Shown: positions 5,641 through 19,162, numbered from the stretch's first letter. The stretch: DNA of 64,000 bases from Eutreptiella sp. 'Long Island Sound 2002' (GCA_964036045.1 OZ038378.1:182218001-182282000); one strand, 5' to 3'. Notes: generated by a model from the sequence alone, not told the origin. Numbers and translations are program-made.

Positions 5641-8112
5641 GTGGCTAGCAAGGTGTTAGAAGGGCGCAAGTACATGGAAACCAAGATGCATGTGGCAACA
5701 GGGCAAGGGAGGATGATGGGAAAGGTGAGTTTGTGGTGTGTAGTAGTGGCCATGAATGGGCATTGTGCAAAGGCACGGTTGCTGACCTGTGGGCCCGACC
5801 ATTCAAGCCCAAGCGGAGGACAACCATCCATTGGAGATGTCACCTCTGTAAGCTAGGTCTGACAATGTTGCCTTGCTACCAGGCCCTAGGCCCATGATTC
5901 CGGTTCCAAAGGGGTCCTCAATTTCCACAACCCTTTGTTTGTGCAATACCTGCCTAAGAGCTAAAAAAAAAAAGAAGGGTTATTTTGAACATGTAACATT
6001 TCAACGACAATGGCACATTTGAAGCTAGACACTTTCGACTCCTTGTTAGCAGGGCTATCAAGGAAGAAGGGTATGTCATCATCCCCTAAAATGTGGGGGT
6101 GGACCTTCAGCATACAAATTCCACTGTAGCTGGCAAGGCCACAAATGAGGCCAATGATGGTAGCACCTTGACTGGAAATGAACCATGAGGCTAGAGTCAC
6201 CCCAACGAATCTAGTAATGACGCGAATAATGATGCCGACAGTCGAGGTATGGTTCTCAAAAGCATGCGTCACAAATAGCCTCCTTGACCCGCTCGAAACA
6301 ACCCATGCAACATTTGAACGCAAGACTCGTTGAATGGGACTCATTGAAAAGCCCTTGTTCAGCTCCTCCAGCAGCCGCATCACATGCAATGCGCTTCCAA
6401 TCGTCACGTTGCTGCACCGTGGGTGGTTGTCATTGTGGCACTAAAATCAAGCCCAGCCATAATGCCTTTGATTCAAGCAGTTGGCGGTCTTCAATTTGAA
6501 GAAATTCAATAAGTGCATGACGTACCCCCCCTGCGCAAGCACGGCTGCGTCTAAGCATGGGGTGGGCATTGAACTGCCGTTTTGCCTAGTTTTCTGAGAC
6601 TGGTGCTTTTGTGGTCGTGAATTTAAGATTGGGCATTTGTGAGGTGGTTGTAGAGGGAAAGAGGGGCCCATTCATCTCATTCATTATTCATTCATCATGA
6701 TTGTTCATTCTGTCCACAACAACATTCTACCACACATTTTTGAGGGGGCTTCATCAGTCTTCCACGACGGTAAGTTTTGCGCCCCCAATAAACATGGTGG
6801 AGCGCCGGATCGGGCAAATGTAGCTATTTTCAATTGAATATCTCACTGATCAACCGCAACAAGGTGGCTAGAAGTGTTGCACACTGATGGGCCATTAGTT
6901 TGGCGAACTGTTTAGACAAGGATTTGAAACTTCTCGCAGATCTCTTGAGCCGTCATGTTCAAGTGTGAAGTTATATTTCTCACTGGAGCATAGGAGCAAG
7001 CAAACATTTGGGGATTTGTCCTTCGCTTTTGTTTGTGCCATGTGATTTCGCCACAGGGAATACAATAGGCCTTTGCAGTGTGTGTTTTTGTATGATGTAA
7101 TGCTATATACGAAATATCATATATCATACAGTGGAAAAAGTTGATCAAAATTCACCGCCTTTTGGGCCATTGGAGGAGAAACAATCTCGTAAAGGAGGTA
7201 GAAACGAGACCGTTTGAATAGAAAAAGTAGCTGAATTACAAAATGGGGCACGTCAAACTGCCGCGGGGGGGGGGGGGGGGGGCATGTGGCGTATGTGTGG
7301 ATGCATGTTTTTGTGCGCTGGGGACTAGGCACCCAGGGCCAACCTCTGGGCCCTTCTCGCACCTGTGTATAGAATGCTTACAACGTTGATGCGTGCAAGG
7401 GATCCAGCGCTCAATGGACTTCTATCAGGCAGGGAAGGGACCGTCAACCATACTGGGGTGGGATGAACCAAGGACGGCGGCAGCAGCACAGTGCTAGGAC
7501 ACCCACAACCACGCACATGCACGTGACACCCACGAAAAGCAGAAAGGTGCTTATGACACCTGCAAACTCCACAAAGGAGCACACAAAACCCACAAACACC
7601 AAACACGTGCATGTGAGCCTTGCGCCGTACACACACACCCATAGACGGCACCACGGACACCACTAGCAGGATGGCGGTACGTTAGTTTACCAGGTGGAGG
7701 AGGGGCGCTGCGGTGGCAAACCCATGTGGACAGGGCAAGGAGCAGTCTAGCAACACGGGACACACGGGACTTGCACAATTTAACGGCCCCCACATCACCA
7801 ACCCCAGGCCCAGGACGAGCTATTGGGCCCTTGTCACACAACAACGTCCCCCACGGCACCAGCCACGGGTGTATGTTGTAATCTATGTAATTTTTTTTTT
7901 GCTGTAAATGCGTGTCGCAAAAAAGCCGTCACATCATGTATTTTTTTTTCGGTAAGTCGTGTAAACCTGTTACACGCATTACCACAAAAAAAAATTACAT
8001 GACCTGACAATTTTGTTTTTGCACACGCATTTACCGCAAAAAAAATAGCGCAATGTGATGATTTTTTTGTGACACACATTTACCGCAAAAAGAAATTGCA
8101 CGAAATTGCAAC

Positions 8113-8375
8113 ACTTCTAATTCTGTCCCGCGCTCTGAAGCGTTGGGGACCCCCCAGGCGGCAGGGGTTATGTAGCCACACGGCCCACTTGTGGGCCACT
8201 ATTGATTCTGTCCCCTGCTTTGAAGCGTTGGGGACCCCCCAAGCGGCAGGGGTTATGCAGCCACCTAGCCTACTTTTGGGCCACTTCTGATTTTGTCCCC
8301 CGCTTGGAAGCGTTGGGGACCCCCCAAGCGGCAAGGGTTATTTAGCCACTTGGCCCACTTGTGGGCCACCTGTGA
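8113..8375 (+). repeat. 3 x 85-bp tandem repeat (left subterminal array of the MULE-like element)
   Basis: GAAGCGTTGGGGACCCCC begins at 8137, 8222 and 8307 (exact 85-bp period). Confidence 0.92.
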
Positions 8376-9160
8376 TTCTCTTTGCGCCTCCACCTATGGC
8401 CATTGTGCCACAGAAGAAGGTTAAGGGAAAGAAGGCCCCGCCAAGTGCACCCCTATTGACCCTTCCACTTCCAAAAGGCGCACTCGGAGAACCATCCATA
8501 GTGAAACAACCCCTTTTGGGGGTGGGACATTGGTTGATGGACAAGGATATCTTATGTTGGTTGAACCAAGAGCCCTGCCACGTGGAAATCGATCAACCAC
8601 ATGCGTGGACTCTTGTGGTTCTTGAGATCAAGAGACTGTCTAGTTGCATGTGGATGGTTGAATCTGGCACCACACTAGACAACATGGCTTGGAGCCGGCG
8701 CCACATTTTTGTGGTCAATAGTGATGAGAAAGAAGTGTGTGCCTTCGATTGTCGTGTCCGGTTGGAGCGTTTCATTATTTGGGTTCGGGAACCTCTAAGC
8801 TCCATTCATTTTATCCGTCCTTTCTTGACGGCAATCGAGAAGCTTTGCTCAACAACCAAGCACCGGGCTTTGGCATTCCAAAAGGAAGGTTGGTCTTGTG
8901 GGTTTTAGAGCTTGCTTTCAGAGCTTGAACATCACAAACGTGGTTCCCGGATCACCGGGGTTCTTTTTCGGATGTGCCCCTCACCCCAATGGGTCCCGGT
9001 CATGTGGATTATGTATTGAGCATTGTTAATGCTGATCGCGCTATGCGGGTCATTGAACCGCCTAGTGAAGATTTGGAGGGTGTGACTGAGCTTCCTTGCC
9101 CTCCTGAGTCCCCCCCTAGCACCCAAGTTGATCCCGCCCCACCATCGGTACCGCCGGCGG
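8372..9160 (+). pseudogene. Ulp1/SENP-like (peptidase C48, clan CE) cysteine protease pseudogene, copy 1
   Basis: GHWLMDKDILCWLNQ (WLxD-like motif), HIFVVNSDEKE[GLHWF missing]VCAFDC, WVREPL, FQKEGWSCGF. After a 13-bp duplication carrying a stop and one frameshift it continues FQSLNIT..DHRGSFSDVPLTPMGPGHVDYVLSIVNADR into a Pro/Glu-rich linker. The catalytic His is lost by an in-frame 15-nt deletion relative to copy 2. Confidence 0.75.
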
Positions 9161-9839
9161 ATGGGTGGCGTGTCTCGTCTTCATATTTTATTTTTGGATA
9201 TGTAACACCGGCGCCTCTGGCAGACAGGGGACACATCTCCTCCTCATATTCCTCTTCCGGGGTTCAAACTGGCGACTCCATAGTGGCAGACGGCTGCACT
9301 GCTGCTGCACTTGGAGGCCAAAACCTAGCCTTCCGGTCGGCAATTTTATGGAAGCAACATGTAGGCACGTCAAGCCAGCCCCGTCTAGAATTATGCATCA
9401 CTGAGGCTGGGCCTACGCCCCCCCCACACACCAAACCAAACACCACAACGCTTGTGCACACACTAGCTACATGTGCTGAAACTTAACTAGTCACGGTCAC
9501 GGGTAAGGCCGAATGAGTGCCATGCGTAGCAGCCCGGAGACAGTGGATGTGGTAGTATATAGCTCGCTTTAAATGAGCGCTCCAGGATTGGGTTCAGGTG
9601 CTAGATAGCAGTGACCAGTTAAACACGATGCGGCACCCACTGTACGGCCACTCAGCAGTCCGCGTGTATATATGATAGTGGAGCACCTCAACCAAGAAGG
9701 GGACACGAGCCATTGTGTGTTGATGTCACTATTGGACTAAGGGCTGAAATAGTCTATGGTGGGGACATTCAGTCAATCAGAACCGACATTGTTCCCCAAG
9801 TTGAAGGTGCACTTTTGGGCATCGAGGAGAGTGTTCATC

Positions 9840-10160
9840 CCACTCGAAGGCAAGGAGGCCCCCGGTGAGCAAAGAGTCCCGAGGCTAAGGCCCGACCTTC
9901 CATGGCCACTCCCACAGAGGGGGACACCCGTCCCAAGGTCCCCATCCGTGGAGAGTGGCGCAAGGTGCCGGATGGCCACCCGACAGATGCATGTGGCCTG
10001 TTTGGAGCGTGACCAGCTTTTCATCAATGACCCGGCCAAGCAGCTAGTAGTGGAGTTGCACACCGCTTGTCAGCTTGACACCAATCGTGGTGCGAAGCCC
10101 AAGTCTAGCGACGCAAAAGCTGACTTGATCCACAAGCGTGCATCTTGCAAGTACTTGTAG
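9840..10160 (+). pseudogene. Probable C-terminal part of the element-encoded protein, with a SAP/HEH-like helical motif
   Basis: Frameshifted LEGKEAPGE..PEAKARPSMATPTEGDTRPKVPIRGEWR.., then DQLFINDPAKQLVVELHTACQLDTNRGAKPKSSDAKADLIHKR, resembling the SAP pattern LxxxELxxxCxxxGLxxxGxKxDLIxR. Confidence 0.4.
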
Positions 10161-10190
10161 CGGGTGCATCTTTTGTGTGCTATAGTTTCC

Positions 10191-10605
10191 CCCATCCCAG
10201 TGCCTTGGTGGCTTATAATGGTGGCACTAATGTTGGCCATGGCCCTGTCACGACTCTTTTCTTGAGCTTGATTTGCTCCCAGTGCAGGCACACTAGATGT
10301 TGGCCATGGCCCTCCCTGTCAGGACTCTTTTCTTGGGCTTGGTTTTGGGTTTGGGGCCAATGACACCATGTGAAACAATGTTATATTGCATGCTACAATA
10401 TTGGCCCCATTCCAGTGCTGTGGTGGCCTGTAATGGTGGCACTAATGTTGGCCATGGCTCTGTCAGGACTCTTTTTCTTGAGCCTGATTTTGTTCCTAGT
10501 GCAGGCACAATGGATGTTGGCCATGGCCCTGTCAAGCCTCTTTTGTGGGGCTTGATTCTGTGTTTAGTGCCAATGACACCATGTGATAGTATGTTATATT
10601 GCCCG
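10191..10605 (+). repeat. 2 x about 215-bp tandem repeat with internal ATGTTGGCCATGGC sub-repeats (right subterminal array of the MULE-like element)
   Basis: Units start ccccatcccagtg (10191) and ccccattccagtg (about 10406); each holds two ATGTTGGCCATGGC blocks and ends gccaatgacaccatgtga...atgttatattgc. Confidence 0.88.
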
Positions 10606-13600
10606 AGTCCCAACTAATTGGTGGCCACATAGAGTACTTGGTGCACTGTGGACTCGGCGTCCCATCGGTAAGGTCGCTATGGGGTGCCGTACAGAACCGG
10701 TAGTTGTACATATTGAATGTGTTGCAAAAGTTGCATTTCCCCCCCAATTTTTCAATTTTTTTTAAATAGTTTTATTTACACGACTTACTGCAAAAAAAAA
10801 TTTCCCGCGCTTACCGCAACAAAAAAATATACGACTTGACAATTTTTTTTTGTACACCAGTTACATTTTTCACCAGCCATAGCCCCACAGGACCAACTAC
10901 CACCGGAGGATAAATTTATATGGGGACAAAGTTGATGTGGACCAATTTGGAAGCCCTCCCTTCTACCAAAAAAATGTTTCTTGCAATTTTGAGGATCCTT
11001 TGCTGCAAAATGTGTGCACCGGAGCCCATCCAGTGACCATCCAGAGCCCATCAGGAAATAGCAGCAACCATCCACTGGGAAACAACAACAAGGGACCTTA
11101 TACCAAAACCTTACTTCATTTCTAAGGAGTAGCACCAAGATTTTCCCCTCCTAATTTTGGCCCTTCCAAAAAAAAAACCTCAAATTATTCCCCCGGCAGT
11201 ATTGGGCCGCACACACGAGCAAGCGGCGTAGCCAGACACCAACCTGAAGGCCAAGGAGACAAGGGTGACTCGGGGCACTGTGCAAAGGGAAAAACAGGTT
11301 ACGTACAGGCTCCCCTAACGCAAAATCACTGCAAGACAGGACACATTGTCACATGGTGGGGATATGCTGCCGTCTTCGTCACGAAGGGGGTGTCAGTGGG
11401 AGGGACCCCCCCCCGCAGGGCTCCAAATTGACACAATGAACTGAGAGTTGTGCCTATGACCATATACCTGTGTCACGGGGGTGTATGCGAGTCCTGTATT
11501 CGTTGCTCATGGCTGCAGGTCTCCAACCTGCACACATGTACAGTAGGTGAAGAACTGGGCGGGTGACATGTCACCTCCAGCACTTTCCACCACCCAGGTG
11601 GGGAGGGGAGGGGTTGCTGTAGCGCATACAAAAGGTCATGCCTTGGAGCTCACATGCACTGTTGTGGCTCTGCCTGTTTACGGTCGAAACAGAGTGGGCC
11701 AGTTGATGCACACTGATGAGACCTTGAGCCCTTTGGTCCTGACAGGGATGTCGCCAGCCGTGCCAGTTGCTCAACAACAACGTGCACCTTCACGGTTGGG
11801 CAGGGGTGGAGAAGGGAACGCTAGCAGCACCCCTATGCTACCAATCGGCAAGGAGCCTGGCCTGGTGTGCCCCACATGTGCCAAGCATCGTGGGTCTGCC
11901 ACGCTGCTCTGTCGTCACATTGGACATGCGAGGTGGGTGGCAGTGCTGAGCACGTTAGGGGCGGCGGCACGAGGCCAATAGTCTAGGGACTGTACACACA
12001 CGGAAATTATATGGGTGTGCTATTTTCACCTACCTTGTCATTTTCAAATACCTTGCTTATCCTAAATTATGCAACTGTCAAGACCTGGGTACCAAGTTGG
12101 ATTGCTGACCTTTTTCTTCTTTGTCCTCTTTTTTTATTCTTCATGCCAAAGGAGTATCACATCTCGCTATATAACTCTTGTCTTGTCGCAGGCCCCGTCA
12201 AAACTCATAGGAGGCCTGCTGTAGGCTACACCTTCCATCTCATTTATACGGTGTCTTGCAATCCTCTGGCAGTTCTCTGCAATTTTCTAGTAATTCTCTG
12301 GCAATATCTGGATACACTCGTCCAGCACATAGAATGAACGACTGTTGGTGTGAGTATGATTCATGTAAACAACAGAGTGACACAGGAAACAATCATAATC
12401 TCTGGATAAAATCCTGTTCTGATTAGTTACATGATTGCCATGCGCCTGCACTAGCGGCATTGGTGCAGCACACAGCCGGAGTTGAACATCATCATGTCCA
12501 ACAGGCCCAACAGGCAACCATGCCAGCATGGTAGCATGCACATCACAATCATCACCCATATGTCGTCCCCCAACAAGCAGCAGCTCAACAAGCAAGGCTA
12601 TCATCCTCCTCTTGTAACCCGGAGCCGCTATGTCACAAATGTACGAGCGTCGTGCTTGCTGGCAGCGAGGGGGCATGCATCCAGTTGCTAGAGTAAATCT
12701 TTGGGGCCGTCTTGTCTGAGATAGGACAAGAAGGGAGTTTGCTGCACGAAACAACGAAGCCCTGTATTTTCTCATAATACTTACTAGCACGCACAACAGC
12801 AGCATCCGTGCACTCACAGGAAAAGAAAATACGAATCACCATGCATATGTATGGGAGTTGGACAGGGGGTGGGGGTGAATCCGATGCATTTTCAGTTTTC
12901 GGCTGACTTCTCAAAAATATCCTTCTGGAGGGGGTGGGGTGGGGGGGTATGTTACACCCTTCTGAAATCTCCAAGAAAAGCGCATTTCGGAGAGGAATGG
13001 GTTATGCAGGGTAGACGGCAATATTTTTGAGTACCAAAGCTGAACTTTTCGGCATGTCATGGCCTCCAAGGTTTTGCGCGCGTGTGTGCCAGACGGGGTG
13101 TCCGGAGTTTTTATCGGTCCACGTAGCCATCATGTCTTCCACATATCAAATGCAACAAATCCATTTGTTGGCTTCACCCTCAGAGGACCATATGTTGGAG
13201 GCTTGGGGCTGGCAAGGCTGAGACACCCCCTCCAAATTTGTTCTGGTGAGCAAATGTTTTCCAAAATGGCCCAAGTTGCCAGCTTTGCCCAGGCCCTCCA
13301 CGTCCAAATTTGGGGGGACAATAATCGCCCCACCGACAACACAGAGAAATTCAAAAAATCGTCAAAGAAAGGCCGACTTTGCGCTGTTTTGGCCAGTATC
13401 CCCCCCCCCCCCCCGTCCAACCAGATTAGTCAGCGCCAGCCTTGGTGACATCTGTCAGTGTTCTGTACGGGCGGCTGCACTCATTTACTCTTGTGGGTGG
13501 GCTGGCTAGGAGCGGGCACGTGCAGGGGCTTTAGGACCAGCCGGACTGCAGTGTACCGCTTGCGGTGTTCTTAATGGCTAATCGACGCCGTGGGTGGGAC

Positions 13601-14970
13601 AAGCTGACTCGTAGGAACAGGGTTCAGTTGGTCCTCTACACATTTTTTCGGGTTTTATTTGGCCCACACATTCCCCAGTGTGCACACTTCCTGTACATCA
13701 GTAGGCTGTCCCAGCGGTAATTGTCGTGATTCTTGGGCCATTATCGTTAGTTCAAATCGTGCAATCCCCAATGTTGATTGGGGCCAAAAGTTGATTGGGA
13801 TGCACCACTACCAAGGGGTAATGCCTGGTTTGATGCCCTGAGTGGATCAACATGGGAGGAAGCTGGGGATCGTCTCTGCCCCCGGGTGGTGGTAGACAAG
13901 GTAGGCAGCATATCGGCTGGGGTCGCAAGAGCTAATCCAGGCGTGATATGGGGGCTTACCCAACAGCTAACCTAGGCGGCCCATGAAACATTCGATTGCT
14001 GTGCTCGCTCAGTGACCTCAAGGCAACATTCGGTGCTGGTCTGGTTTGCACTGTGAGAGTGGCCGGGCAAAAGAATTTGTGGTTGCAGAACATTGCGAAT
14101 TGAATTGTGTGAGTCTGGTATGAGGTCAGGATCATGCTGGCTATTTCAAAACCTGACGTCATGGCCCTGTCCAACCCCCATATACATGACAACATATGCC
14201 ACGAAATAATACAGACAAGTATATGGGGAACAAACCGGGGAGCAGCACTGACGGTGGCGGTATCAAATATAACAATAGCAGTCGTAATAGTAGCTCACAT
14301 AATTCATATGGGGCCTCCAGTGAACAGTTGGTTGGTTGGGGGGGATGCATCCTGTCCTAACCAGGAGCCCCCCCCCCCCCCCGCTTCCGGTGTGGCCATT
14401 GTGTACAGGCATGATTTGATGCTGCTGTGTGAGGCCACATCTGCTTGTACCTTGTGGATCAGGGGGTGGTGCTTGTCCGTAAGCATACATGGCATGGGGT
14501 TGGGCTGGTGGTGGGTCGTAGTTGTGGGTGTTGGCCCAGCAAAAGGGGCACCTTCGAGGACGGACCCTGCAGGTACTGCAATTTTGTGCGTCGTGCAGGG
14601 GGCAGGGCATATCTACCTGGCATCACGATGTGTGGGACTCCCATCGCTCTTGTGGACAGCTTTGTCGCACGCATGTGCTCGTGAGACGGTGACCATGCTC
14701 ACTGCAGCAATGCAATGAGCATCACGGAAAGCACCGACGGCGAAAGCGGTGATGGTGACACCACCGATAGGCCTAAGGGTAAACACGTAAGTGTGCACAC
14801 TGCAAGCCCCAGGTGTGCATTCGTTACACCGACGGCAGCAGGGGACGATATGTGTTGTAGACTGGACCTCCCAGGGGGGGGGGGGGGGCTTCGTGGCGGA
14901 AAGGGGGTTTGTCTGCAACACCGCACGCAAGCATCCGCACTAGCCGCTGTGGCGGTGGGTGTTGGTGAGT

Positions 14971-15292
14971 GGCAAAAATTCCCATTTTTCCGTCGGTGTG
15001 TGCGGTGAGCCGATTTTTACAAAGGGAACTGCGGGGAACATCTTCGACTTCCAGAAAAGTGGGGGAAATGGGACTATGGAAATGGATATTTTGTCCGATT
15101 TTTCTCCCTTTTTTGTCCCATTTTTGTCCCATTTTCCTCACCCACATCCTGCCACAACCCTCCACAACCCACATCCCGTGTGATATGCCCGCTATTTCCC
15201 CATTCCCCCCATCCCCCCCCCCCCCCCCACCATTTCTCTCCATTTCCCCCATTTCCCCCATTTTTCCAGACTCCAAAATCCTGGTTTGGTGA
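14971..15292. mobile_element. GGCAAAA-starting foldback-type insertion (AAATGGGG / CCCCATTT arrays), family shared with 43299-43860
   Basis: Flanked by GTTGGTGAGT at 14961-14970 and 15293-15302; G-rich and C-rich complementary sub-repeats inside. The flank motif also occurs in a local repeat, so the duplication could be coincidental. Confidence 0.55.
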
Positions 15293-15829
15293 GTTGGTGA
15301 GTTCAGTGGCGGTGAGCGCGGATGCCTGCGCACGCAATGGCCACGAATGCCACGCCAGGCCATGGGGGAGGAGTGTAGAGCGCACGAACCCGACACTTTA
15401 AAGAATCAGCTTTAGACGAGGGCAGACGAGGGCGCAGGGGGCTAAAAAGAGGTTGGGGGTGTCTGTTGAGGGACTGACCCGACCAGGCCTTATTGCGGGG
15501 TGCGTCTGGGATGCGGCAGGAGCTCCCCCAAAGGGTGGTCAGATGTGATGGGGGGTGCGACAGGAGGGATGGGGGGCAGGCGAAGTCGGTGTCCTACTGT
15601 CATGTGTCTGACAACTCCCTGCTGTTGGCAGGGTTGGGGTTGAGGGGTCCTCGGTTGGGCCCTCTATCCAGCCGGCTGCCGCTGACGAAGGCTAATTTTT
15701 TGCAAGGCTCACTGATGGCCGAATCACTAGTGGTGAGATGGTGCGGGGGGGGGGGGGGGGGGCAATCCCTTGCTCCCGTTCCGCGGCCACAGTCTGTTGG
15801 AACTGGTAGTACACTGTCGACATGACAAG

Positions 15830-17230
15830 GGTTTGTTGTGCACCATTTGGTGCATTCAAAAAGAACCGAAAAGGAGACATTACGGAAATGATGTCGCTCG
15901 AAGAATACAGATGGTGATTGCAAATGTGGCGACGAATACCGCCGGTTCAGCAGAGCAAGTGTGGGGTTGGTGTCAAGGACCAACGGTGAGTAGCAGGCTG
16001 CAGGATGCCACAGCATGCCGCAGCAGCTGAAAATGGCACTTCATTGGTTAGGTGTTGTTGCAGCACGCCGCAGCATGCCGCAGCGACCAAAATTTTTTTT
16101 GGTGTGGTACATTCATCACGGCAGTGATGCATTTTATTGGTGTTTATCCTTCCGTCGGGTTTTCGTGTACTGTGTCCCCACAGCGTCACATTTATCGTCT
16201 GATTGTTGAAATGTCCAGTAAAGAGGACAAACGTGAAATTGGTGCCCAGCATCGTGATACCCCCTCATCTTCCAGATCCATAGACTGTCCTTTCAGGGTG
16301 CAGGTGGGTGTACTGTGCCTCAGCGGGAGCACTGGGGTTTTGCACCGCTGCTGCTTGACAGTGATGCGTACAAGAGGCTGTCGGATGTGCCATATGAGGA
16401 CCTGTTTGCCACGGAGACCCAAGAGGAGGTACACAGCCGCATCAGAAAGCATGCCCGCATACAGAGGTGTGATGAAGCATTCCAGAGAAGTGCTCGGCCA
16501 TGTTACGGGCAAATCGGTTTTTTCTTCGGTCAATCATCACAATTGTACGCCCTTTATACCCTTTGCATGAGATCTTTCTGGGTCTGTTAAAGATTAGAAT
16601 TGGCTCTTAAACAGCCTCAACGCAGCTCCTACAGCCCCCATCCCTGAACACCACCACCACACCAAGGAACCCTTGCGGAACAAGGTCTGCGCTTCGGAGG
16701 TCGACAATCATGCCCGGATGATCCCACAGGAAGTCATCCACGCCTCTAGTAGGGGCGCCGCTGACGCCGTATGCAATGCTCGGTATTGGCCCCACATCCC
16801 CGTTGCAGAAGGAGATGGGTGGCTCCCTATCGCTTGTTGTTGGATCTGCGCAAGGGGTATTTTACGAACCTTGGCACAGTCTAGCACAATACATTGATTC
16901 GGTTTGATACACTTCATAATTATGATACATTCAGTACATGCAATTATACCGTTCACAATTATGATCATCATGATGATTGAATTACATTGGCTGTGATTGC
17001 TCATCCGCATTATCTTTGTTCGGTCTGGGTAGGTCACGCTCCCCATCGAATCATCCTCGTCTTTTTTGCGCACGTTCTCCAAGAGGGTCTCTTTTTTGAT
17101 GTTGAAGAATTAGAACTTGAGGAACTAGATGGTGCCAGTCTCTGTGAAGGAAAGTCTTGAAAATGGTCCACGCATACTACTGGAGATTGTTTTGCGCCAT
17201 AAAAGCACCATGCTCCGCGAGTTGTTGCGG
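15830..17230 (+). pseudogene. Degraded, apparently spliced coding remnant of unknown (probably transposon) protein
   Basis: Protein-like blocks GAFKKNRKGDITEMMSLEEYRW*.., RHIYRLIVEMSSKEDKREIG, VPQREHWGFAPLLLDSDAYKRLSDVPYEDLFATETQEEVHSRIRKHARIQRCDEAF and FFDVEELELEELDG..LLEIVLRHKSTMLRELL, separated by GT..AG-like gaps, stops and frameshifts. No family recognised. Confidence 0.35.
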
Positions 17231-17926
17231 TAGAGTTGAAATTTCCTCGATTAATGGTGGCGCATTTGGAATTTCGTTGCATGCATTTGCAATCTCTTTT
17301 GTCAACTCAACACTACACATTGTTTGCATTCAAAGATATGCTGTTTTTTTTTTTTGCAGCATGTGCCCACTCCCGCGCTGTTGCGGATGTTGCTGCTTGG
17401 TTCCCTGGGGGACCCTGTGCACGAGGGTCCCTAGTCATCTGGGCGTTCTAGTCACCCTGTGCGCCTTGGGGGGGGGGGGGGGGCACACGCTGACGTTCGC
17501 GATCTTCATGGCGCTAACTGCAGAAAAAAGGAAAAAAACAGTTGCAATGAATAACGGATCAATATTCCTACACCCCCCTACCCCAAAATTTGAGTTTTAG
17601 TTTACAATGTACAATCTTTTGGTTTATTCATTATTGAATGTCATACGTTTCATAAGTACTTTCGGGTTTGGGTCACATGCATTATGCATACCCTTTTCTG
17701 ACACTCATTACACAAACAGAAATTGGACAAATTCTCGCCGATTGAAGCATGAGGAGCAACCAAAGCAACGAGCGTGTGGAGCTGTGAGGGGCCCAAACCT
17801 AAAACCCCAAAGGCCGCCGTAATCGACGACTTTCCACACGCCTGTTCTGGATATCCCATGACATTGAACGGTATTAGCGTGGATTTCATCGCCATTTAGA
17901 TGGGACACGGTACAATTGAATGCATA

Positions 17927-18161
17927 CAGGGGGGGGGGGGATTTTCGTGGCAATTTAATTTCGCGTGGGAAATTTCGCGTTTCAAATTGACCGCGAAATT
18001 TCCCACGCGAAATTCCGGGTTCTCCGCGAATTTCTCGCACACTAGCAGTACACACTGTGGACTCTGGCGGGGGGTGATCCGCTCAACCCAGGGGGCTCTG
18101 CGAAGTTTACCACCGCGAATTTGACTTGGCGCGACACTCCCCCCCCCCCCCCCCCCGCCTG
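17927..18161. mobile_element. Tc1/mariner-like MITE (235 bp) with TA target-site duplication
   Basis: TA|CAGGGGGGG... at 17925-17927 and ...CCCGCCTG|TA at 18161-18163. Internal perfect 23-bp inverted repeat 17957-17979 / 17992-18014 with a 12-nt loop. Confidence 0.75.
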
Positions 18162-19162
18162 TATGAGACGTAATGCTGGTGAATTGACACGTGGTAAACG
18201 AACTGTGATATCATTTGATAGAGATTGCTGCGGATGAATTCGTATTATCTTACGTTATATTGCACCCCCCTTCCCTCCTCATCCCTGAACACCACCCCCA
18301 TCACCCTTCGTTTTAGCAAGTCGAGTCATTTGAGACGTGTTCCGCAGCCCGGTCCTGTTTCTCTTTCAGTGGAATCGACCTGAAGGACCGCAATGCCACA
18401 CTCTGTAATGAGCTCCTCACTGCAGTATGTTGTATTGGTTGTGGATGGAGGCTGATAGCCCTTCAGGCATGCAGTCGAAAGGATTCGGGAGAATCGCCAT
18501 CCGCGGCTTTGCTGGACAGGACGTATTGCGATACATCCGGCACCTCTTGACTAGCATCCCCGCACCACGACAGGGGGGTTGTGCTGGGACGTGGCATCCC
18601 AAGCACAGCACCGTAACAAACGCACTGCAAGCGACGAGAAGGAACACGGGTGAATGTTCGGCACCCCCTATGTCAAGGGGGTTGCCATAAAGGCTCAGGA
18701 AGTGTCAGTGGGTACTTCTATGTGCAGGCACTTGTATGGGTGAGGAGCGGGAGGCCTTAGCCCCCCTGGACATGTCCCGTGCCACCACCAGCCGCTCCTG
18801 CAGCTTCCGATAGCAGCAACAGCATCGGGTACTTCTACACAACACAAATGCCCTCTGCACCGCAGGACTATGCACAAGCCTTGATCATCAGTCATCACTC
18901 CCTCTTGCACAACATGGGGGTAGGTCTGGCTGTCCGACTCAAGACCCCTCCGGCTCTCCGAAAGCACGGTCCCGCCTATGCCACAATACACAACACACAC
19001 GTATCACACAACTGCGATGGAGGACCATGAAAGGCTCATGCCCCGCCCCGCGCTCCGTCCCTCTGCCGGTCTCTCGCTCAAGGGGGTCGCCAGCTCCTTG
19101 ACTCCGAAGCGACCCCCTTGACACTGGAGCCATGATGCCCTGCCCCCGCCCACATTCCACAG

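Follow-up and report, generated by a model that had tools for sequence, protein, structure and literature searches.

A decayed, internally deleted copy of a Mutator-like transposon family whose transposase carries a protease-like tail in Eutreptiella

The element and its full-length relatives

The 64,000-nucleotide stretch of the Eutreptiella sp. 'Long Island Sound 2002' assembly that was analysed here (GCA_964036045.1, OZ038378.1:182218001-182282000; hereafter the window) holds at positions 7869-10873 a whole element of 3005 bp, which starts with GTGTATG and ends with TTTTTCAC. From left to right it contains A/T-rich subterminal motifs, a short 85-bp tandem array, a broken coding remnant that is interrupted by an unrelated repeat, a 213-bp repeat and again A/T-rich motifs (Table 1). 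With a probability of roughly 90% we consider it to be an old, non-autonomous member of a Mutator-like family of DNA transposons that has undergone an internal deletion. Judged by its sequence, the apparent protease gene is the dead tail end of the single long transposase gene of this family and, because it is only such a tail, the locus reads as an ordinary defective transposon.

An initial annotation of the window had proposed a Mutator-like element that carries a CE-clan (Ulp1-like) protease as cargo and has no transposase. That the element belongs to a true repeat family is borne out by a whole-element search of the 2.28-Gb source assembly, with 197 matches listed of 8937 first-look candidates (73-90% identity). 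A six-frame search with the 170-residue open reading frame (ORF) gave 150 scored matches at approximately 65% identity, many of which lie inside much longer open frames. At C4:14.81 Mb lies a copy whose frame runs through 1366 codons without interruption or introns (L065:3542-7639, minus strand); at C1:23.59 Mb (L064) the same frame is split by one stop codon. The coding part of the window copy aligns to codons 989-1366 of this family frame (blastx); the codons before approximately 989, and with these the transposase part, are lost. The absence of a transposase was therefore correctly seen for the window copy, as only codons 989-1366 are kept. The idea of cargo, on the other hand, has to be abandoned: full-length relatives hold the protease-like part as codons 989-1366, in frame with an upstream Mutator-like DDE transposase. 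A linkage to the transposase of a Mutator-like element (MULE), which had been put forward as something to look for, was found in the form of a fusion within one 1366-codon frame.

The C1 copy was read end to end by joining three stretches (L066, L064 and L067). It measures 11,764 bp (positions 6739-18502 of the joined stretch) and has the termini of the window element. The order of its parts is subterminal motifs (approximately 230 bp), 85-bp satellite (approximately 5.5 kb, 6967-12518 of the joined stretch), long frame, 213-bp repeat and 3' end; between the satellite and the region that the window also has, the sequence is unique.

Among the sampled short copies, which match the full-length reference at 97-99.7% identity, the internal breakpoints are many and different (reference positions 9014 to 10019), and the window's own deletion junction was found in no other sampled copy. 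Given these varied breakpoints and the private junction of the window among the sampled copies, the short copies are best taken as independent deletion derivatives and not, as first supposed, as a single non-autonomous family. A propagated subfamily defined by the window's junction was considered as well and rejected, since the junction is absent from the other sampled copies. The nearest relatives of the window copy are 87-89% identical over the protease part. First-look candidates numbered 308 for the DDE core and 1898 for the protease part, so that copies retaining the 3' part are in excess by roughly six to one.

Termini, arrays and decay of the window copy

Table 1. Features of the element and its direct surroundings (positions in the window; nt, nucleotides).
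Feature	Position	Strand	Evidence
Left target-site duplication, CAGCCACGG	7860..7868		Directly outside the conserved 5' terminus (11 copies); 7/9 identical to the right one
Whole element, internally deleted and decayed Mutator-like copy	7869..10873	+	Termini conserved across copies; family 73-90% identical to the window copy
5' terminal inverted repeat, ~22 nt, imperfect	7869..7890	+	Consensus 5' end against reverse complement of the 3' end
5' subterminal region, ACGCATTTACCGCAAAAAA-type motifs in both orientations	7891..8111		3 matches within 7895-8092, where 0.01 would be expected by chance
85-bp tandem array, 3.2 copies	8112..8379	+	Tandem Repeats Finder score 396
Internal deletion junction, 85-bp array joined to codon ~989	8377..8378		Full-length reference has ~4.2 kb of unique sequence there
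Remnant of protease-like domain and Pro/Glu linker, codons 989-1243	8378..9131	+	blastx against the intact frame, 63-71% identity
Left duplication of the nested insertion, CCCAAGTTGA	9122..9131		Same exact 10-mer recurs at 9795-9804
Nested insertion, unrelated 663-bp repeat	9132..9794	+	Absent from every other family copy
Remnant of linker and conserved C-terminal tail, codons ~1240-1366	9795..10160	+	Ends ...KRASCKYL plus stop
213-bp repeat, 1.9 copies	10190..10602	+	Tandem Repeats Finder score 606; variable number in other copies
3' subterminal A/T-rich motif region	10745..10851		Inverted pairs I2-I4 with the 5' motifs; conserved over 16 right ends
3' terminal inverted repeat, ends ...TTACATTTTTCAC	10852..10873	-	Conserved right ends and comparison of consensus ends
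Right target-site duplication, CAGCCATAG	10874..10882		Adjoins the conserved 3' terminus; 7/9 identical to the left one

Alignment of other copies (11 left ends and 16 right ends) gives conserved termini, GTGTATGTTGTAAT... and ...TTACATTTTTCAC. The flanking duplication had at first been placed at the 9-mer CACCAGCCA, which is indeed exact at 7857-7865 and 10871-10879, but the real duplication lies 3 nt rightward: because the termini are conserved across other copies, the CAC of the right-hand 9-mer is element and not flank. For the family as a whole the duplication length of 9 bp is solid and agrees with the value of about 9 bp (range 8-11) that marks the Mutator superfamily. In the fetched loci both ends are present for 11 copies, of which six have a perfect 9-bp pair, one agrees at 8/9 and two fit 8 bp, and a perfect 9-bp pair is expected by chance in about 4e-6 per copy. 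The alignment of the flanks of many copies, which had been advised, therefore yields fixed termini and a length of 9 bp that is not a matter of chance. The terminal inverted repeats, already described as imperfect, are also short, with the consensus ends agreeing at 16 of the first 22 nt. Classical plant MULEs have terminal inverted repeats of 100-200 bp, far longer than those of the present family.

From searches of the genome with both flanks no empty site of the window insertion could be shown. The left flank has a single paralogue (74% identity), C11:64544229-64544657, which is the only good one; it matches over 415 bp, ends 2 nt before the element and could be a duplicated empty site. Approximately 23 nt past the right duplication (window ~10897-11200) starts another repeat family of approximately 300 bp, for which 1584 first-look candidates were found at 76-86% identity.

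Both internal arrays of the initial annotation are confirmed, although the unit of the second measures 213 bp (against 215 bp as first given). The 85-bp satellite, with 3 units in the window element, reaches 50-65 units in long copies and approximately 65 (5.5 kb) in the full-length copy. At L062:815-5183 the 85-bp array runs in the opposite orientation to the ORF, and approximately 950 bp are deleted in frame from the DDE region of that copy. The A/T-rich subterminal motifs form inverted pairs (I1-I8), of which I2-I4 link the two ends of the element, and may represent binding sites of the transposase.

The coding remnant is damaged at several places. A 15-nt deletion between 8734 and 8735 removes GLHWF (5 codons), the block with the candidate catalytic His, and for this reason the 'VN..H' motif that had been reported is missing from the window copy. 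A TAG stop is present at 8906-8908, after ...WSCGF, and a frameshift lies between 8908 and ~8950. The tail remnant aligns at 49-55% identity in two frames (blastx), with an in-frame stop and a frameshift. As to the protease ORF described earlier, an ORF ending in ...FQKEGWSCGF and followed by a Pro/Glu-rich stretch is indeed there, but it is broken by the deletion, the TAG and the frameshifts. What had been read as a series of ORF, linker and tail is moreover interrupted by a later insertion, given the presence of the nested 663-bp repeat. All other family copies join query position 1275 (9131) straight to 1939 (9795), with a 10-nt overlap. The 663-bp repeat is a family of its own, with 64 matches listed of 2118 first-look candidates; its copies end at query positions 1 and 663 and have fixed ends, TCCCGCCCCACC...GACATTGTTC, with no obvious inverted ends. 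Other copies of this repeat hold an extra segment after position ~75.

Because the His block is deleted, the window copy lacks the complete His/acid/Gln/Cys series, and together with the stop, the frameshifts and the nested insertion this should leave it unable to make an active enzyme. It is predicted to encode nothing functional, and the suggestion that its product could de-SUMOylate chromatin cannot be upheld for this copy.

The transposase and its protease-like domain

The intact frame opens with an N-terminal region and a DDE core; a CxC finger remnant and a Cys-rich finger follow, and then the protease-like domain, a Pro/Glu linker and a helical tail. Core motifs of the DDE type (AIDGT, SDGA and C..H..RN) are found in the upstream 988 codons. 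After the core, at the expected place of a SWIM finger of the CxCxnCxH type, there is a CTCANYC...C motif without His at the canonical position, and Pfam SWIM gave no match on family proteins or segments. A HMMER search of 1.84 billion representatives yielded 549 matches, of which the 150 listed are mostly fragments of the window family. The relative P0078 (33% identical, E 1.6e-33) matches Pfam MULE with 29.8 bits against a cut-off of 27.6, and P0298 reaches 27.4 bits with the same model; P0002, P0266 and P0263, which share 40% identity over 609-670 residues, stay below threshold (MULE 19 bits, Transposase_mut 15 bits). The DDE core has MULE/SWIM/ZSWIM clusters as its language-model neighbours, scoring up to 0.94 and with 167 shared features (slightly below the guide value of 170). 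Based on the 9-bp duplication (with its perfect pairs in 6/11 copies), the Pfam MULE matches on relatives and these neighbours, we place the family in the Mutator superfamily, in agreement with the first description of the element. Other searches were less informative: Rfam gave no match on the window, a word-based protein search with the 1013-aa protein gave no match either, and a word-based search with an 18-member profile returned the window family only, none of it with Pfam domains.

The genome also holds several further Mutator-like families at 31-48% from the DDE core (for instance at C15:33272083, C14:47984358 and C14:6011350), with open frames of 900-1500 codons, which together form a diverse set of large MULEs. 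A sister family at 40% identity (P0002, P0266, P0263, P0056 and P0051) is present as contigs of approximately 5.4 kb in ENA, JGI and Logan data; these may be transcripts of another euglenid. The sister family keeps the order of transposase, finger and protease, and in P0056 the finger region continues into the protease-like part.

In intact copies the residues H1112 (HWF), E1133 (WEPL), Q1163 and C1169 (the latter two in FQxDGWSCG) stand in CE-clan order, the candidate acid being Glu and not Asp, and HWF, E and Q..G.SCG are kept in relatives down to 39-42% identity. The spacing between Gln and Cys is 6. For yeast Ulp1, Mossessova and Lima are said to have described in 2000 a pair Q574/C580, with a spacing of 6 as well. 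Language-model neighbours of the domain are in 28 of 30 cases Peptidase_C48 (PF02902) clusters, at 0.95 and with 182-185 shared features. The rows listed by VIA that align more than 120 residues of the domain include AvrA, SseL, RavZ and CidB, which we take to be CE-clan enzymes; the wide VIA search is dominated by the C-terminal helical hairpin. Subfamily consensuses were built for a 755-bp part of the transposon: in the majority consensus of the window's older subfamily the frame is open again and all four residues are present, and between the two subfamily consensuses the ratio of nonsynonymous to synonymous substitution rates (dN/dS) of the core is 0.51. On these sequence comparisons the domain is very probably CE-clan protease-like, though not to be filed as a C48 member. 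The earlier designation as an Ulp1-like CE-clan protease is thus supported by motif order and language-model neighbours, but Pfam C48 never matches; the structural check that had been recommended produced weak rows of CE-clan enzymes, but nothing significant. True Peptidase_C48 matches are found elsewhere in the genome, in multi-copy open frames of 985-1182 codons (for instance C1:197535377, C1:84247907 and C11:30342262), which probably represent a different transposon family with a canonical Ulp1 domain.

The last ~70 residues of the frame are conserved in relatives (50-66%). The tail is modelled as two long helices (282-309 and 323-336) with a predicted local distance difference test (pLDDT) score of 60-73, and its structural matches are generic helical hairpins. 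The pattern ..V.ELRAAC......G.K.DLI.KR.. resembles SAP by eye only, and Pfam SAP gave no match at E 10 on the 149-aa tail. The SAP-like tail of the initial annotation is therefore replaced by a generic two-helix hairpin.

Weighing the readings and related systems

The history of the locus might be reconstructed as follows. The autonomous form would be approximately 11.8 kb long, with short imperfect ends, A/T-rich subterminal motifs, the 85-bp satellite, the 213-bp repeat and one intronless frame of 1366 codons; it would move by cut-and-paste via its own DDE transposase, making 9-bp duplications. The window copy would first have lost approximately 4.2 kb between the satellite and codon 989, likely through interrupted gap repair (the usual origin of such derivatives), and then have inserted at CAGCCACGG. 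Subsequent decay would have deleted the His block, produced the stop and the frameshifts, brought in the repeat at 9132 and added two substitutions to the duplication. At most, the window copy could have been mobilised in trans by full-length copies. The protease-like domain of intact copies is probably an accessory activity of the transposase itself.

Several results weigh against this interpretation. The flanks of the full-length C1 copy disagree (GAGGACAGA against CCTCCTCCA) with its termini intact; this mismatch suggests that two copies may have recombined, or that the copy was rearranged in some other way. The deletion derivatives were sampled with the protease part as query, and such a sample cannot show preferential retention of that part. 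Pfam MULE (PF10551) and Transposase_mut (PF00872) remain unmatched even at E 10 on the family's own 1159-aa and 786-aa proteins and on the 423-aa core. Pfam Peptidase_C48 is unmatched, be it on the ORFs of the window, on intact proteins, on the domain by itself or on divergent relatives (three window ORFs, the long proteins and five separate segments run at E 10 gave noise only), and of the 57 matches listed by a scan of the whole genome with PF02902 at E 10 none lies in the window family. A comparison of the 18-member profile with PDB sequences found no protease, and neither did phmmer with the domain. Finally, the structure model of the domain from 64 sequences is poor (mean pLDDT 56.9, with the Cys region under 50; 36 for a single-sequence AlphaFold model) and Foldseek with the domain model gave nothing at E <= 0.001.

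In Kaonashi elements (KI-MULEs) the Ulp-like gene is separate and the family is not known to have a transposase of its own. It might be argued that here, too, a Mutator-like vehicle captured a host Ulp1-like gene and carries the protease as its only cargo, independently of any fusion: the window copy and many short copies hold the protease-like part without the transposase, candidates for this part exceed those for the DDE core about six to one, and open frames of 250-700 codons persist in many young short copies. Nonetheless, we regard this as very improbable, as the full-length copies have the domain in frame with the DDE transposase in one intronless 1366-codon frame, the breakpoints of the short copies are varied and fall inside that frame, and the fused arrangement recurs in relatives at 40% identity; a six-to-one ratio is also expected from deletion derivatives that retain the 3' part. 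Hardly any weight can be given to an assignment to the Zisupton/KDZ group instead of Mutator, a link that had been drawn before. The layout is similar, with a large transposase, Cys-rich fingers and a C-terminal protease-like domain (a SUMO-protease-like domain occurs in some Zisupton/KDZ members), and Pfam MULE stays below threshold on the family's own protein; however, Zisupton makes 8-bp duplications (PMC12730594) against 9 bp in the window family, the relatives match Pfam MULE and Transposase_mut whereas no KDZ model matched in the Pfam scans of family and relatives, and the language-model neighbours are MULE/SWIM/ZSWIM clusters.

A different objection concerns the domain itself, which might not be a CE-clan peptidase at all, HWF...E...Q..G.SCG being a chance resemblance in a module that does something else, for instance binding protein or DNA. 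At none of the thresholds tried did the domain have a sequence match in Pfam, NCBIfam or the PDB, and Foldseek gave nothing significant. Given that the His, acid, Gln and Cys are kept in CE-clan order at 39-42% identity, that nearly all language-model neighbours are PF02902 clusters, that CE-clan enzymes appear among the listed VIA rows and that SENP5, adenain, XopD, SseL and SENP3 are among the weak Foldseek rows, we consider this unlikely; Ulp1 domains are, in addition, a known appendage of Mutator transposases (PMC2836005). We would likewise give only a small chance to a bolder proposal, in which the module is a distinct unclassified branch of clan CE that escapes the C48 model, with Glu as its acid and a conserved helical tail, and the young 250-700-codon frames of finger, protease and tail are perhaps expressed. 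If true, young deletion copies could supply protease activity in trans or interfere, like the truncated P-element proteins that repress transposition.

Returning to a Mutator family with a fused protease-like tail, its closest counterparts are the Mutator transposases with a C-terminal Ulp1 domain in hydra and lancelet, for which the domain was suggested to act in the transposition process (PMC2836005, Fig. 1e and Discussion). These resemble the window family in having a DDE transposase and a C-terminal cysteine-protease-like domain in one protein, 9-bp duplications and deletion derivatives. They differ in that the domain of the window family is too divergent for Pfam PF02902 and has Glu where Ulp1 has Asp, and in that the window family has inverted ends of approximately 22 nt and a large internal 85-bp satellite. 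Ulp1-bearing MULEs of plants, KI-MULEs of Arabidopsis and CUMULE of melon, are cited in the same paper (refs 29 and 31); the likeness consists of a Mutator-like element, an Ulp1-like coding region and many copies without a working transposase. In the window family, unlike in KI-MULEs, the domain forms the end of the transposase in one frame with it, and the copies without transposase are plain deletions. Since Ulp1 domains have been published for the Mutator transposases of hydra and lancelet as well as for MULEs of plants (PMC2836005), the kind of element is not 'possibly undescribed', as had been thought. Ginger1, with a C-terminal Ulp1 or OTU domain (PMC2836005), also fuses a transposase to a protease of the de-ubiquitinase/de-SUMOylase type, but its transposase is Gypsy-integrase-like and nothing of that kind was found in the window family. 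Deletion derivatives of the Ds/Ac and Mu types retain the two ends but lack internal coding sequence, with breakpoints that vary, and do not differ in principle from those seen here. In the literature we found nothing on euglenid Mutator-Ulp1 elements.

The locus itself, a dead copy of a defective transposon, is of very little importance and can be masked accordingly. The elements of this genome that appear to carry a protease without a transposase are best read as one Mutator family plus its deletion derivatives. The family adds a protist case to the recurring fusions of transposases with SUMO/ubiquitin-type proteases, with a protease-like domain that is divergent enough to escape standard models. 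As some copies are 99.7% identical to the full-length copy, the family may have been active recently.

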